DNA of 63,829 bases, the filler included, from Bigelowiella natans CCMP2755 (lineage: Eukaryota > Protista > Cercozoa), in assembly GCA_000320545.1 (NCBI GenBank). It is 7 parts of 7 records of this genome, joined end to end, with 100 filler letters (N's around TTAATTAATTAA, not from the genome) between each part and the next. Parts side by side here need not be neighbours in the genome. Positions count along the whole stretch, not along the records: positions 48,454 to 58,052 come from ADNK01000850.1; 6 more parts are not named here. One strand, 5' to 3'. The translations under genes and the position numbers were made by a program. This document shows, one piece after another, positions 48,454-57,426 of the stretch (positions are counted from its first letter, which is position 1; each line of letters begins with the position of its first letter). A model generated the notes under the pieces. That model ran no database searches. It was not told the DNA's origin and saw only the letters and a program-made list of their open reading frames with translations.

Positions 48454-50491
48454 TCAGCTGGGGGGTCTGTCCAGTAGCTCCGTATCTGTCGATGTCTGCC
48501 GGGTTCTCTTCCGTAGCTCGGTAGGTGTAGGTAGCTGTGTCCGCTAGGTCCATAAACTCTAACGCATTAACGCTTGACTCAGAGGTCCACTCGTCAAGCC
48601 GTATCATGTTCTGGCTGATGGTCCTGCCTGACTTCTTTGGCAACTTAGCAAAGTATATCTTGTGATTGTAGAATGATATGATCCCCCCTAATTTTTCTAG
48701 GGCATCCTGTCCGAGGAGTAGTTCCATGGATAAAGTCATGGCTACTCGGGTCTTGATTTGGGTCTCCGCGTCGCTGCCAGGTATCTGTAGCTTTAGCATT
48801 AGCTCACCGACGGTCTTCATGGAAGAGCTTCCGTCTGCTTGAGCATATTTACGTTCTTTCTTAGTCACTTGATCCAATAGTCCTAACCTTCTTACTGTGC
48901 TTAGGCTTATGAAGGACTTCGGCATGCTGCCACTATCCCAAAGGGCAGGTAGTTTCTTGTAGTCTCCGTAGCTGTCTTTAACTTTAACCTTGGTCATAGC
49001 AACTTTGATAGTCCTGTTAGCGTCTTCGTCATTAATGTTGCATACTCCTAAGTTCTTTATGTCGTCTAGGGTCATGGGCTTGTCTTGGTCCTGCGTTGCT
49101 GGTACTGCTGTCTTCGTCGGCGCCTGCTTAAGGTGATCTAATATTCCGTTTATCTGCTGCTGTATAGCATTGATACTGTTCTGCTTTTTGTTCTTATATT
49201 TATTGTTCTTCCCGTTGTTGCTGCCTTGCCATTTGCTGTTGTTATATCCTTGTCCTCTGCCTTTCTTTCTCTTTAACTTCTCGTAGTGTTCGTTGAGCTG
49301 CCTGATCGTCATCCTGGGTCGTCCTTCTTTCCTGTCTCTGCAGTCTTTAGCGGTGTGTTTCCCTTTACGTGAGCAGTATCCGCAACGTCGGTTACCTTCC
49401 CTGTCCTTGTACCAGTCTCGCTGCGGCTTAATAGCGTTAATGTTTCCTATGCCAGGTACCTTAGGGCTGGTAAACTTGCGGTCCTGCTCCTGCTCGCGTA
49501 GGGATATAGCCTGCACTGCTGCCTCCATCGTGGTGTAGCCTTTCTCCGTAACGTAAGTGGATTCCTTTATCTTTAACTTGAACTCTTCAAACCTTGCCTG
49601 ATCATCACCTGTGTTGTAATTAAAATCATGTAGTTCGTCGATCATATCCTGGAAGCGCGTGGCAAAGTCTCTAACAGGTTCTCTCTCATGCTGCATCATT
49701 GCTCTGTATTTTCTAATAGCCTGGGGTAGGGAGTTAGCATCCTGTTCATTTACAAAAGCCTTCATTATCGCCTCAACGTCTCGTAGCCCACTAACTGTAG
49801 TGTGTATTTTCTCTAGCTGCCTGATCCGGGTCCTGCCTGTCTCGTAAAGGTCCATGGCTTGCTTTATTATAGCTAGCCATTTGAGCTTGTCGTTTTCGGT
49901 GGGGTTAGGGGTAAAGTCGCAGAGTATACTCCTAGCGTTCTTCCACCACCTCCTTGCCTCACCTCTTTTCCCGTTGTATTTCGTTATCATAACCGGTGCT
50001 GTTTTAACAGACATGAACTGGGTGTTCCGCTGTACCGGCTGCTGCTGCTTGACGGTGCTCTGGGTCGTCCCCCGCGAGGCGCCCAGACCCCCGTCGTTCC
50101 TAAACAAAGCTGCCCACTCTGGAGGTAAGTCTGCTTCGTAATCCATGATGTCCTGCATGATAGCTGCCCAAACATCATGTGTCTGATACTTGTATTCTAT
50201 CGATACTTTCAGTTTGGCGTAGTTGCTCGCCCTGGGTCGCAAGGCTCGTAATGCCATTACGACCTTCTTGCTTTCGGCGGCCACGTCCTCGTCGTCCGCC
50301 TCGTAGAAGTTCTCCAGTGCCTCTGCTGCTGCATCTGCTTTCTTAATCCCGGGTGCTGGTCCCGGCGGTGCCTGTGGAGGTGTTCCTCCTCCTTCCTTAG
50401 CGTCCGTATCGCCCTTCCTTTCCTGTTTCTGCTCGTGCCCTTGCACGGCCTGCGAGCCAAAGTCCTGCTGTTCTTCTAGCTGCTGTGACAT
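48454..50491 (-). mobile_element. LTR retrotransposon gag-protease ORF (Ty3/gypsy-like by inference), truncated at the contig end
   Basis: Intronless ORF of about 680 codons with a capsid-like region (Q...E.VRDFATRF), a zinc knuckle CGYCSRKGKHTAKDC, and an aspartic protease ALWDSGS...LLLGQDAL, with no gag-pro frameshift. Confidence 0.88.
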
Positions 50492-51831: not shown

Positions 51832-53037
51832 ATGCAAAGCAGGGACGATCAAGCGCAGCATGCGGAGATTGAACGAATAAAAGACCAAATCAGCCATGCA
51901 AGCAACCCAGAAGAGACAAAAAGGGCAATGCTTAAGCTTTCAGCCTTTCCAATGACGACGAGCTTGTTGATACAGACGAAATTGCCCCTATTCCTAAAGA
52001 AACATCTTGCAGCAGAGACTCAAGACCTGAAGATTTTGGGTAGAAAGCTCAGACGGAAGTGGAAGCAAATCTACAGAGAGGGTGTGGCTGCTACTGGCGA
52101 AATAAAAACGAACCAGAAACCCTCCTTGAGCACACAAAGCAGTCCTCTAAACAACAGTATAGATAGTCGTGCGAAAGCTGCACGTCGGATTCACGAGGCG
52201 ATATTAAGAAAGGGAGTAAGGGGTGCAATTACGCTAACTTTTGGAGACCAAGCCGAGAATCATGTCGGCATGCAAAAGATAGGCCAGCTTGCTGAGTCAG
52301 GATTCAAGATCGAGGAACTTGAGGAGGCCAAGCAGCGTTTTGAGAATCAAGGGTGCAAGTGCGAGCTGATTGACCTAAAAGAACTCCTAGAGGATAATGA
52401 GAAGATGAAAAAGGAAGCAGAAGAAGCTAAGATCTTAATTATCCGTGACGCAGTGCAGGCCCTCCTTACAAAAGATGAAGATGTTAGAACTGGGAAACAG
52501 GATGAGATTCCGTTTGCAACCCAACTTTTCATGGAGCAGAAACAACTCACTTGGGATAAACATGCTTGGATGAAGGGCCGTGTCGTCAATAAGCGCGCCC
52601 GGTACAACCTCTGCTATGCTGAAGCCCCTCAAGATCCGGACTACAATGCTAAAAAGGGGAGAATTGTGGCGTATTCCACGATTCCCTTGACAAAACAGCT
52701 ACGCCAGGCGCTTCCACAAGTGTTGGGGGGAAAAGCAGAGGGTTTAACATGCGAGGGAAACTACTACTACAATGTTAGCCAATGTGGAATCGGTTTTCAC
52801 GGCGATTCTGAGCGGCGGAAAGTTGTCGCAGTTAGGTTGGGAGCAACAATACCGTTGCACTATCAGTGGTTCTATCGCTCACACGCTGTTGGTAGTCGAG
52901 GAATTCACCAAATCAACCATGGTGATATGTATATAATGTCCGAGAAAGCAGTCGGCACTGACTGGAAAAGAAAGATCATCCCCACGCTTCGTCATGCTGC
53001 TGGTTGCAAAACGTTCTTAACTATAAAGAAAAAGTAG
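51832..53037 (+). CDS. Intronless fusion: TFIIS N-terminal (LW)-like helical domain plus AlkB-like 2OG-Fe(II) dioxygenase (401 aa from the first ATG; frame open from 51607)
   Basis: AMLKLSAFPMTTSLLIQTKLPLFLKKH...LGRKLRRKWKQIY matches the TFIIS-N pattern. EGNYYYNVSQCGIGFHGDSE (N.Y...IG.HxD), VAVRLG, NHGDMYIM and LRHAAG give the AlkB-type HxD...H iron triad. Confidence 0.82.
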   Translation: MQSRDDQAQHAEIERIKDQISHASNPEETKRAMLKLSAFPMTTSLLIQTKLPLFLKKHLAAETQDLKILGRKLRRKWKQIYREGVAATGEIKTNQKPSLSTQSSPLNNSIDSRAKAARRIHEAILRKGVRGAITLTFGDQAENHVGMQKIGQLAESGFKIEELEEAKQRFENQGCKCELIDLKELLEDNEKMKKEAEEAKILIIRDAVQALLTKDEDVRTGKQDEIPFATQLFMEQKQLTWDKHAWMKGRVVNKRARYNLCYAEAPQDPDYNAKKGRIVAYSTIPLTKQLRQALPQVLGGKAEGLTCEGNYYYNVSQCGIGFHGDSERRKVVAVRLGATIPLHYQWFYRSHAVGSRGIHQINHGDMYIMSEKAVGTDWKRKIIPTLRHAAGCKTFLTIKKK

Positions 53038-54350: not shown

Positions 54351-54381
<31 letters not shown>

Positions 54382-55656
54382 ATATTCTCTCTCTCCCTCC
54401 CTCTCTCTCTCTCTCTCGCTCTCCCCCTCTATTATACATAATATCAATGGTAAAAAATGACAAGGCGTTCATGTAGACTACCCTTTTCACTTGCACGGTG
54501 GGGGAAACCAGGATGTAGTCCAAAGTCGAGATGAATCGATCACGATCCTTGGGAACACAAAGAACATGGCGGGTAGTAGTCGGGGGGGGTTAGGCGCAAT
54601 ATTGTCGTTGGTATGGCATCATTATTATGATGATGATGATGATGGTCACGACGATGGTGATGGTTACGATGACGATGACGATGAGAACGATAATGATGAT
54701 GATGATCAGTACAACCTCAATCTTCGAGTAGGTCGTAAACTCCGGTTCATGACCATAGACACATCGGTATGCACTTTTTAACAAATGTGTTGGCATTGGC
54801 TCTCCCCCTGCTCCCCAAAACTTCCTTCTTACGAGACGGAGAAAGGTATTGGGCGGCGACGATGGGGGCGGGGACACCATCGAGTACGATTGCCCTCGCA
54901 TGTCGGTGTTTGAATGCTGCTGCCGCTGCTGCAGCTGGTGGTCAGGAAATTGCTTTTTATTGTTCTTTTGGCTCTCGATAGCAGCCTTTCTCGACTCTCC
55001 CATGACAAGATTCCGCAGGTAGTCTTGATGATTGCACACAACAAAGACCCTCCGTCAGCACTTGGGAATACGTACACACCACATGAATATCGGACTATGA
55101 TGAGTTCTATTCACATTGCTATCATCACCACCCCTCTGTCTCTTCTTTACATCATTGCACTCTCCCCCTCTCTCTCCCTCTCTCTCTCTCTCTCTTCCAT
55201 CTATCTGTCCGCTTGCCCCTCACACACACACACACACACACACTTTCCGTTGCTCTTGGCGTGATGTTCATCTTGGAGGCATTTGGCCGTGGGACGGTGA
55301 TGAGCTTGTACGCAAGGTCTGAAGGCTTTATGTTCAAGTCCCCGGCGAGCACCAGGGCCTCACCTACCACGTGCATAGAAGGAAATGGCAGCCCGCATTG
55401 ATGATGCATGCAACGGTGATGATGACGACTCAATTTTTTAACATGTGCTCTCTATCTCTCTCTGCCTAAATCTATTTCTCCATTTCTTCCCCCCCCCTCT
55501 CCCTTTCTGTGTGTCTATACGTGTGCTGTGTGGTAGGCTACCTTTGGCCAGTCCGTGCACGAAATTGGAGAGGTACACAGAGTGCAGTGACAAGACACCT
55601 GGTGTCCGGAAGGCGCATGGGAGATGATACGTGGCCACGCATACCTATAAGCGACA

Positions 55657-55690
<34 letters not shown>

Positions 55691-57367
55691 TTTAGACGTA
55701 TCACACGTATAGACGCTCCCATGAAAAATCTTTGTAAAACAAAACGAGCGGTTCTGTCAGTTCCTTTTCCTGTGCGACATCGTGTTTTGCACAAGTCAGC
55801 AATGATCCACGGCTTGTTGTTTATATCTGCAGCCTAAACAGTGCAGCGCTGCAATCTGGTACATGGCTGCTGCTGCTGCTCATACCCTTGTGTTGAGGGC
55901 GGGGTTCCGAAGCTGCACGAAAACGATCTTGTTACTCCTGAAAGAGAGCATTAATGTGGTGATGGTGATGGTGATGGTGATGCTAAGGACGATCTTAGTT
56001 CACTGTCGTATCGCACGATATTAAAACCTCTCATTTTCGGATCTGCCTCCCTCCTTCCCCTTCTCCTCTTCTTCCAATTTTTCCTCTTCCCATATTGTTC
56101 GCTACTGCCGACCTTTTCCTTGCATTTCTCCACTCGTATGAGGTTGCTGCTGCCAACGAGGCGGAACGATACGATGATGATGATGATGATGATGACGACG
56201 ACGACGGCGATAGGCCTTGGTTCTTCCCACACCCTTCTACCTCTCCTCCTTTTCCTTTGAAGAGGGAGAATGGAAATGACGACGACGATGTCAATGAACC
56301 CGTCGCTTCCCGTTCTTGAGTTTGATCTCTGGATGATATTGCGCTGACTTAGCTAGATCCTCCCTTCTCATCCCCTCCCCCCCTCCATCCCCCCTTCCTC
56401 AGCGTCACGTCTACAATCATCATCACCATCATCACATCCACTCTCACCACGACAACCCTAATTCGCGTATAACCTTTTTTTAGATAATGAACCCTACCTT
56501 GGACGATAGCCGATAAGACCGAGCAGGCGCGCCTTCAGCTTACCAACCAGGCCCTCCCCAAACCAGGCTCCCCCTCCAGCAATCGCTCCCCTCCTTCTCC
56601 TTCTTTGCTCTTCTAATATCAGCTTCGGATGACGCCGAGGTCTTCGTACCATCTCGTGCTTGTTCCGTCGCAACGACGAGGAAGGCGGGGAGGAGGAGAA
56701 GAAAGAGGGTTTATTACCAAGTCTCGGCGTCGATGAGGATGGCCGAAAAATGGCTGGTAGGCGGCGGTGCTGCTCCTCCTGCTGCTGTGTATGGCGATTG
56801 TAGCTATCGAATCTCTCTCCTCCATCTCCCCTTCTTCCCCGGTCATCACCGTTCGCCGACGATGGGTTGTTGTTGCTGTAGCTGTTGATGTTCTCCGTAG
56901 CAGAGGCGGAAGCCATGAGGTCGGACAAGCGGAATATCTTTGCCCTTTCGACCAAGAACTGGTCGTTTGGCACTGCAATTCCACTTCCTGTGCCAACAAC
57001 AACAATGACAACAACAACCAGAAAGTGTTGCTCACTCGTCCAACCACCACAAGAGGAAAAGGAAGGGGTGGGAGGAGGAGGAGGAGGAGGAAGCAGAAGG
57101 CAGAAGAGAGCCGCGGTGCCGAAAGCCTGCAAGTGAAACAAATACGCCAAAAAGAAGTAAAAGAGAAAAGAAAATGCTGCTGCTGTTCTGCTACTTGTAC
57201 TACACCTCACCCATATAGTCATCCATGCTGTGCCCGTCGAAGGAAACAATCTAGGAATAATGATAACGGGGAGGAGAGGACAAAGGCAACGAGCTTAAGA
57301 CACCGATTTTACGGAATTCTGATGTTTCACACACCTGACCAAGCACCTGATAAAACAGAAACACACA

Positions 57368-57426
<59 letters not shown>

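Follow-up and report, generated by a model that had tools for sequence, protein, structure and literature searches.

Our results indicate that Bigelowiella natans carries an intact nuclear gene that encodes a two-part enzyme, in which a TFIIS N-terminal domain (TND, also called LW domain) and an AlkB-like oxidase are joined in a single chain. The gene lies on the forward strand at positions 51832-53037 of the window, that is, of the whole stretch of 63,829 nucleotides analysed here, which joins seven parts of the genome of strain CCMP2755 (assembly GCA_000320545.1); the part that holds the gene comes from record ADNK01000850.1. We rate the product as an oxidase of the AlkB superfamily, of a distinct subfamily, in a new and functionally suggestive architecture. 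The TND may tether the oxidase to RNA polymerase II (Pol II), where it would act on DNA or nascent RNA, a reading to which we give about an even chance of being right. The comparative data support action at the transcribing polymerase, given that two unrelated modules of the elongation complex, the TND and Elf1, are found fused to the same catalytic core; these fusions are the best evidence available for it.

Results

An intact gene without introns

The coding sequence is complete and uninterrupted. It starts with the ATG at 51832-51834 and ends with the TAG at 53035-53037, giving 401 codons with no internal stop, which agrees to the base with the single intronless open reading frame (ORF) reported in a preliminary description made from the DNA sequence. 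The frame is open 5′ of this ATG as far as 51607, and no earlier in-frame ATG occurs there. The two motifs singled out in that description were also located exactly, FHGD at 52795-52806 corresponding to F322-D325 and RH at 52990-52995 to R387-H388.

An independent gene model of the Joint Genome Institute (JGI 53140, here P0125), with the same start and likewise intronless, encodes a B. natans protein of 403 amino acids, two residues longer than that of the window. The two proteins share a 90% cluster and align without gaps, 388 of 401 residues being identical (97%), and the piece that holds the window ORF is therefore taken as nuclear DNA of a chlorarachniophyte. The 13 residues that differ suggest a second, near-identical copy or an allele. 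The model carries the prefix 'estExt', which presumably denotes support from expressed sequence tags (ESTs). The guanine plus cytosine (GC) content of the ORF is 0.47, that of the surrounding piece 0.485. About 3,000 homologues were found and all the invariant residues of the catalytic domain are kept in the query, which places the ORF far beyond chance.

The N-terminal domain resembles that of TFIIS

Residues 1-88 (51832-52095; this and all features of the protein below are on the forward strand) form a five-helix bundle with a conserved Trp, W77, in an AlphaFold2 model that was built on an alignment of 122 rows and has a mean predicted local distance difference test score (pLDDT) of 91. The helices span residues 2-21, 26-37, 43-49, 51-59 and 64-88, with pLDDT of 89-96, and in the sequence Lys and Arg are frequent in helices 3-5. 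TNDs are right-handed five-helix bundles of about 80 residues, in which a basic patch and two hydrophobic pockets hold acidic TND-interacting motifs. In an unbiased structural alignment against 48,161 representative PDB chains, the best helical match was the LW domain of yeast TFIIS (7faw; Z 12.4, root-mean-square deviation (rmsd) 1.7 Å, 82 of 84 residues), the next TND matches being the LW domain of Arabidopsis TFIIS, MED26, Elongin A, LEDGF and HRP2 (Z 9.3-11.6, and 10-11.6 without HRP2). The rmsd to TNDs was 1.7-2.3 Å overall. Matches between helical bundles may be unspecific when Z is below 13, and the fold match is therefore not sufficient by itself; unrelated HEAT-like and designed bundles reached a Z of at most 10.7 with the same domain.

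Profile comparisons lead to the same family. A hidden Markov model (HMM) of the other fused TNDs, from which the query had been left out, finds the B. natans protein at 19 bits, via helices 2-5 and the K-W motif. When nine fused N-terminal domains, that of the query and those of eight relatives, were combined in a profile, the TNDs of TCEA3 and TCEA1 were retrieved at E ~1e-16, followed by MED26, Elongin A, HRP2, PNUTS, IWS1 and LEDGF. W77 is the only invariant column in these nine domains, and it is aligned with the Trp of the Arabidopsis TFIIS LW domain. That same LW domain is the sole PDB sequence match of the B. natans N-terminal domain (E 0.93), and NCBIfam TIGR01385 (TFSII) matches the query at E 0.0024. 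The query is a divergent TND, with a deletion of three residues and a Pro in place of the Gly of the usual 'IG' turn. Judged by modelled fold and by profile, the N-terminal domain is a TND whose nearest counterpart is found in TFIIS itself. The TFIIS-N-like bundle had been placed in the preliminary description at about 51900-52080, that is, at residues 24-83, a span that lies within the modelled bundle and covers the Pfam match at residues 33-80.

The TND is followed by a linker (residues 89-127; 52096-52212), which according to pLDDT consists of a disordered stretch rich in Ser, Thr and Asn (residues 91-105, pLDDT below 50) and a helix (residues 106-125). The linker is unconserved among the relatives.

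The catalytic domain has an AlkB-like fold and a complete metal site

The remainder of the chain comprises a family-specific N-terminal module, delimited by alignments and conservation (residues 128-198; 52213-52425), and an AlkB-like double-stranded β-helix core, supported by fold matches (residues 199-401; 52426-53034). Over residues ~175-394, the fold is closest to ALKBH3 (Z 14.0-14.2, rmsd 3.1-3.4 Å, 171-176 residues) and ALKBH2 (Z 12.7-13.6), with 167-176 residues aligned across the two. These are followed by ALKBH6 (Z 11.8) and E. coli AlkB (Z 10.2-10.9), and further down by ALKBH7, FTO and Ofd2 (Z ~10) and by prolyl hydroxylases (Z ~9-9.8). The core was also matched by Foldseek, at E 2e-5.

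Conservation was counted over 333 non-identical cores. The three metal ligands, all present in the query, are each found in 332 of them: H323 and D325, which belong to the motif H323-G-D325 (52798-52806), and the distal ligand H388, in R387-H388 (52990-52995). In the motif N310-Y311-Y312 (52759-52767), on the first jelly-roll strand, N310 (332 cores) and Y312 (333 cores) are the probable Asn and Tyr contacts of 2-oxoglutarate, and from the order of the motifs they are probably the equivalents of N120 and Y122 of AlkB. R328 is present in every core, R387 in 330 and R335 in 327, while H363 is found in 206. The program hhalign placed H323 and D325 on H131 and D133 of AlkB and the second HGD, at residues 363-365, on an AlkB turn that provides no ligand (LEHGD), in a profile-to-sequence match that is weak (E 0.011). 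The structural alignments end with model residue 394 opposite residue 263 of ALKBH3, 242 of ALKBH2 and 193 of AlkB; counting back six residues, and assuming that there is no gap, H388 falls on H257, H236 and H187, respectively. On this combined evidence from model and sequence, the catalytic domain is an AlkB-like oxidase, closest to ALKBH3, whose metal site is intact. The intact HxD...H dioxygenase of the preliminary description is thus upheld by the fold and by the triad H323/D325/H388, with the caveat that it is not a canonical AlkB.

The same core is fused to TNDs and to Elf1 in other organisms

Among 270 proteins compared, 68 have more than 60 residues ahead of the core. The HMM detected TNDs in eleven of these, which represent about nine clusters, and one further representative has a TND match. 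Pfam PF08711 is significant in P0019 (49 bits), P0042 (48.6), P0035 (40.5), P0107 (36.5) and P0115. The TND-fused genes either share their contigs with genes of ABC-transporter and xanthine-dehydrogenase-like type or lie on a contig of 607 kb whose gene calls are split, and the GC content of their genomes ranges from 28 to 57%, a spread that assigns the fusions to several different cellular organisms. A TND was absent from all 80 viral (IMG/VR) loci examined and present in only one of 80 metagenome loci. A search with the TND of P0107 alone returned only P0107 itself, within the limits set by the word index. A star-like tree was obtained for the catalytic core. One of its clades holds eight TND proteins (Shimodaira-Hasegawa-like approximate likelihood ratio test 93), with P0019 and the B. 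natans pair placed elsewhere, and the approximately unbiased test (p 0.41) neither establishes nor rejects that the TND fusion arose once. The architecture first noted in a single gene therefore recurs in other clusters, on contigs that look cellular.

The second module is Elf1. Of the homologues, P0002 scores best against the query and is also its closest row in a FastTree tree of 267 rows, but it lies outside the nearest five in an IQ-TREE tree of 77 rows. Followed 5′ of the called start, the open frame of P0002 is found to encode a complete Elf1 zinc ribbon (78 bits, Pfam E 5.8e-22), and at the locus of this protein, L002, ribbon and catalytic core lie in one exon. A typical Elf1 N-terminus (MGKRKS...) is found just upstream in a different frame, both at L002:4750-4930 and in L094 (P0280), which points to a short 5′ intron. 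P0280, a longer member of the cluster, has an Elf1 Pfam call (six contigs, several samples). The Elf1-oxidase contigs are gene-dense, with 57% GC and eukaryotic neighbours (Rrp40, actin-family, zf-MYND and COMM). A search with the Elf1 part alone, again limited by the word index, gave the known cluster only. It is unlikely that the Elf1 and TND fusions are assembly chimeras, because they occur as single exons on many independent contigs. The recruitment to elongating Pol II proposed in the preliminary description, which we likewise infer, gains comparative support from the Elf1 fusion together with the TND clusters.

Other N-terminal additions to the core are SAP/Rho_N, ankyrin, a DUF5763 zinc finger, DUF4326, a P-loop kinase-like domain and, in one relative, a cap guanine-N2 methyltransferase-like domain. 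In several giant-virus copies from IMG/VR loci (L021, L064, L072/L073 and L083), the N-terminal 130-150 residues of the oxidase ORF form a conserved Cys/His domain resembling DUF4326, and the viral loci L006 and L009 have in common an N-terminal domain of 75 residues that starts with MDKQL. Residues 1-110 of P0097 (L003, GCA_029935995.1) contain two CxxC...CxxC units in the layout of an Rpb9/TFIIS-type ribbon pair. As a double zinc ribbon of that kind, which if genuine would add a third module related to transcription to this core, they were not counted, given a Pfam RPB9 match at E 0.023 and none in the PDB.

A family of giant viruses and protists

When 1.84 billion representatives were scanned, 1,823 clusters matched with E values of 1e-3 or lower and 669 with values of 1e-30 or lower, so that the family comprises ~1,800 clusters at 50% identity. 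IMG/VR holds 273 relatives, mostly on giant-virus metagenome-assembled genomes (MAGs) and on contigs of up to 957 kb, and the 80 loci examined from it all match the core only. Among the members with a name are the '2OG-Fe(II) oxygenase' of a Fadolivirus and proteins of Willaertia magna and Paramoeba. Among 185,579 bacterial and archaeal species, nine MAG contigs match, and these are plausibly mis-binned. The sequences thus describe a distinct and highly conserved AlkB-like family, common to giant viruses and protists and essentially absent from prokaryotes. In the gene neighbourhoods of 160 viral and metagenome loci, nothing was seen beyond ankyrin, FNIP and further giant-virus families that occur in many copies. 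On a 4-kb contig from a compost metagenome (L100), two separate ORFs match the core, both in frame 0 and at amino-acid offsets 207 and 928, which suggests a tandem duplication.

Surroundings of the gene

At 48454-50491, on the reverse strand, there is a long ORF, cut by the edge of the piece, which encodes a retrotransposon Gag that contains a zinc knuckle of CCHC type and, after it, an aspartyl protease. The Pfam matches are weak (gag-asp_proteas, E 8e-4; Retrotrans_gag, E 0.19). The starts of this ORF and of the oxidase gene are ~1.3 kb apart, and the ORF is read in the direction away from that gene. The region 3′ of the gene contains dinucleotide microsatellites (CA, TC, CT, AC and AG) at 54351-54423, 55160-55195, 55654-55690 and 57361-57423 and an imperfect ATG/21-nucleotide repeat at 54625-54706; the long ORFs of this region are low-complexity translations of those repeats.

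Discussion

Proposed action of the oxidase at the polymerase

In humans, the TND of TFIIS binds the TND-interacting motifs (TIMs) of IWS1, LEO1 and PAF1 (PMC9987994). The TND of the B. natans protein would dock the oxidase onto the Pol II elongation complex via the acidic TIMs of elongation factors, and the flexible linker of ~40 residues would keep it near the polymerase. The oxidase, if active, could then oxidatively remove or hydroxylate a base modification or adduct. Its target would presumably be a nucleic acid: nascent RNA, or else DNA that the polymerase has opened, on the single strand of either the template or the non-template side. In the sister lineage, the same core would be brought to Pol II by a covalently attached Elf1.

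This scheme agrees with what is known of its parts. Elf1 binds Pol II directly. Lesions of AlkB type arise mainly in single-stranded nucleic acid, those at N1 of adenine and N3 of cytosine form in single-stranded DNA, and transcription is a main source of single-stranded DNA. ALKBH3 and ALKBH2 act on methyl lesions, which they remove from nucleic acid in single- and double-stranded form. To our knowledge, the known eukaryotic AlkB enzymes get to transcribed regions only indirectly. ALKBH3 has been located at sites of paused Pol II and on the single-stranded DNA of highly active promoters (PMC4517488). The C-terminal domain of yeast Elf1 recruits the repair factor TFIIH (PMC11266705), and ELOF1, the human orthologue of Elf1, is a factor of transcription-coupled repair (bioRxiv 10.1101/2021.02.25.432427, 10.1101/2021.05.11.443558). 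If the proposal holds, the B. natans protein would provide the first example of direct-reversal repair, or of demethylation, that is physically built into the transcribing polymerase complex, and would parallel transcription-coupled excision repair. For the family as a whole, which is very large, uncharacterised and spread over giant viruses and protists, the fusions offer a lead on function that can be put to the test.

Points against the proposal and the departures from AlkB

Several observations weigh against a Pol II-tethered AlkB-like oxidase. Most members of the family are stand-alone proteins of ~255 amino acids; TNDs occur in only ~3-5% of members and Elf1 in only one cluster, and the viral copies with an N-terminal domain have DUF4326-like or other domains unrelated to the TND. 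With the query alone, Pfam PF08711 (TFIIS helical bundle-like) scores 16.5 bits (E 0.007) over the match mentioned above, below the cut-off of 20.6, and the TFIIS-N assignment of the preliminary description thus stands by fold and by group profile and falls short of the threshold by this single-sequence measure. Sequence searches of the PDB with the query and with the family profile gave no match for the catalytic domain, so that its kinship with AlkB rests on the comparison of folds. Pfam PF13532 does not match the query at E up to 1; its scores for the fused relatives are 18-25 bits, against a cut-off of 31.2, and it is found in 22 of 83 representatives at E below 0.001. The R-x5-R strand, which in AlkB supplies two 2-oxoglutarate-binding arginines, is absent, and the alignments have in its place only a short, Lys-rich C-terminal tail (residues 392-401; 53005-53034). 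A Lys at position 394, found in 264 of the 333 cores (79%), is Thr in the query, which reads K393-T394. The position equivalent to D135 of AlkB, residue 326, is occupied by Ser in 128 cores, Ala in 91, Thr in 48 and Gly in 46, and the query has Ser. Moreover, some enzymes with the AlkB fold act on proteins.

In AlkB, D135 reads the exocyclic amine of 1-methyladenine (1mA) and 3-methylcytosine (3mC), and a small residue there suggests that the substrate may differ from those of the classical AlkB enzymes. Residues 128-198 constitute an extra module of ~70 residues, and no AlkB-family structure aligns before residue ~155-175. The strongest motif of the family, G138-Q148, with E142, N143, H144 and M147, lies in this module, and T136 and E142 are each present in 327 cores. 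At the other end, the chain stops 13 residues past the distal His; all relatives, the viral ones included, end 7-15 residues past it, and the structural alignments all stop at model residues 393-399, nearly all of them at 394-397. Taken together, the extra module, the lost R-x5-R strand and the small residue at the D135 position argue for a separate AlkB-like subfamily that has a cofactor geometry, and perhaps also a substrate, of its own. Replacement of the missing last strand of AlkB by the conserved N-terminal strand 132-138, through circular permutation, was considered. A mean-field direct coupling analysis of the 333 cores was too noisy for a decision, but its few pairs involving F395 hint weakly that the short C-terminal tail stands in for that strand.

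Alternative explanations

The protein may instead be a co-transcriptional regulatory demethylase, which, tethered to elongating Pol II, would erase a programmed mark, such as N6-methyladenine (6mA) in DNA or N6-methyladenosine (m6A) or cap-adjacent methylation in nascent RNA, and would not be a repair enzyme. Between viruses and distant protists, 45-60% identity is kept, which is unusually tight for an AlkB of damage repair, and the equivalent of D135, used for recognition of the charged bases 1mA and 3mC, is absent. One relative carries the cap guanine-N2 methyltransferase-like domain mentioned above, although the neighbourhoods on viral contigs show no consistent link with methyltransferases. 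FTO, ALKBH5, ALKBH1 and NMAD-1 are among the fold matches (Z 8.8-10), but the top matches are the repair enzymes ALKBH3 and ALKBH2. N6-methyladenine is abundant in the DNA of protists and giant viruses, and the distribution of the family fits taxa known for this mark. We consider this explanation possible, if rather unlikely.

A broader proposal extends to the whole family of giant viruses and protists, whose members would be oxidases with a conserved target, namely a programmed mark that is made or encountered during transcription (6mA in DNA, or cap-proximal or internal methylation in RNA) in place of random alkylation damage, associated with the transcription machinery and equipped with a cofactor site unlike that of any characterised AlkB. 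It is a speculative and, in our judgement, unlikely generalisation. If it were true, a co-transcriptional demethylation pathway would be common to diverse protists and to giant viruses, which have Pol II-like polymerases of their own, and it would be the fusions with TND and Elf1 in cellular organisms that give away the role of the whole family.

It has also to be considered that the substrate may be a protein, so that the enzyme would hydroxylate or demethylate a component of the transcription machinery, be it a Pol II subunit, an elongation factor or a histone, and the TND or Elf1 would place it beside that substrate. The non-canonical cofactor site and the extra conserved module of 70 residues allow for a substrate other than nucleic acid, the very high conservation is compatible with a conserved protein target, and some AlkB homologues modify proteins, as ALKBH4 does with actin. 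Prolyl hydroxylases, OGFOD1, Tpa1 and Ofd2 match the fold at Z 9-10. However, the nucleic-acid enzymes of the AlkB clade reach Z 14, as against ~9.5 for the protein hydroxylases; some relatives carry SAP/Rho_N domains and zinc fingers, which are typical nucleic-acid binders; and the invariant basic residues K254 and R257 appear to map to the region of the nucleotide-recognition lid of AlkB. A protein substrate therefore seems decidedly improbable.

Least likely of the rivals, and very improbable in our view, is a functionless giant-virus relic or retroposed copy with a TND captured by chance: the family is abundant in giant viruses (the 273 IMG/VR relatives), B. natans contains virus-derived DNA, and the gene is intronless in an intron-rich genome, close to a retrotransposon gag-protease ORF and present in a second copy of 97% identity, but all the invariants of the family are intact over 401 codons, the 80 viral loci have no TND, the relatives with a TND or Elf1 come from contigs that look cellular and have actin, Rrp40 and ABC-transporter genes as neighbours, the GC content matches that of the surroundings and the name of the JGI model would imply EST support.

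Comparison with known systems

The fusion of a TND with an AlkB-like oxidase appears to be new. The preliminary description knew of no protein with a TND-AlkB architecture, and no publication on one was found: a search of full-text literature, whose coverage excludes many subscription papers, for AlkB or 2-oxoglutarate oxygenases with a TFIIS N-terminal domain, TFIIS or Elf1 gave nothing relevant. A review of TNDs from 2023 attributes no catalytic activity to the fold and describes these domains as interaction platforms on transcription regulators (PMC9987994).

The enzymes closest to the catalytic half are human ALKBH3 and ALKBH2, with which it shares the jelly-roll core and, at equivalent positions, the HxD...H ligands and, probably, the N-x-Y motif of the first strand. 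Identity to them is only 14-16%, and unlike them the B. natans protein has the additional conserved module of 70 residues at the N-terminal side and lacks both the C-terminal strand with two arginines and the Asp after HxD. ALKBH2 and ALKBH3 have neither TND nor Elf1, and ALKBH3 gets to transcribed regions via a separate complex, ASCC. Its presence at transcription-associated single-stranded DNA (PMC4517488) resembles the location proposed here. The likeness to E. coli AlkB is more distant, with a fold Z of 10.2-10.9 and with H323 and D325 aligned to H131 and D133, and the family, unlike AlkB, is essentially absent from prokaryotes.

In the N-terminal half, the five-helix bundle and the Trp of the LW motif are those of the TNDs of TFIIS (TCEA1/3, yeast Dst1), MED26, Elongin A, IWS1, PNUTS and LEDGF. 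The known TNDs are found on elongation or initiation factors without a catalytic domain of their own (PMC9987994), whereas here the TND is fused to an oxidase, which would extend a repertoire hitherto non-catalytic to a protein with its own enzyme. The nearest functional parallels are PNUTS-PP1 and yeast Elf1-TFIIH, in which a TND protein or Elf1 brings an enzymatic or repair activity to Pol II (PMC9987994, PMC11266705). In contrast to these pairs of adaptor and enzyme, the B. natans protein would combine both functions in one chain, and the activity delivered would be that of an oxidase instead of a phosphatase or a helicase.

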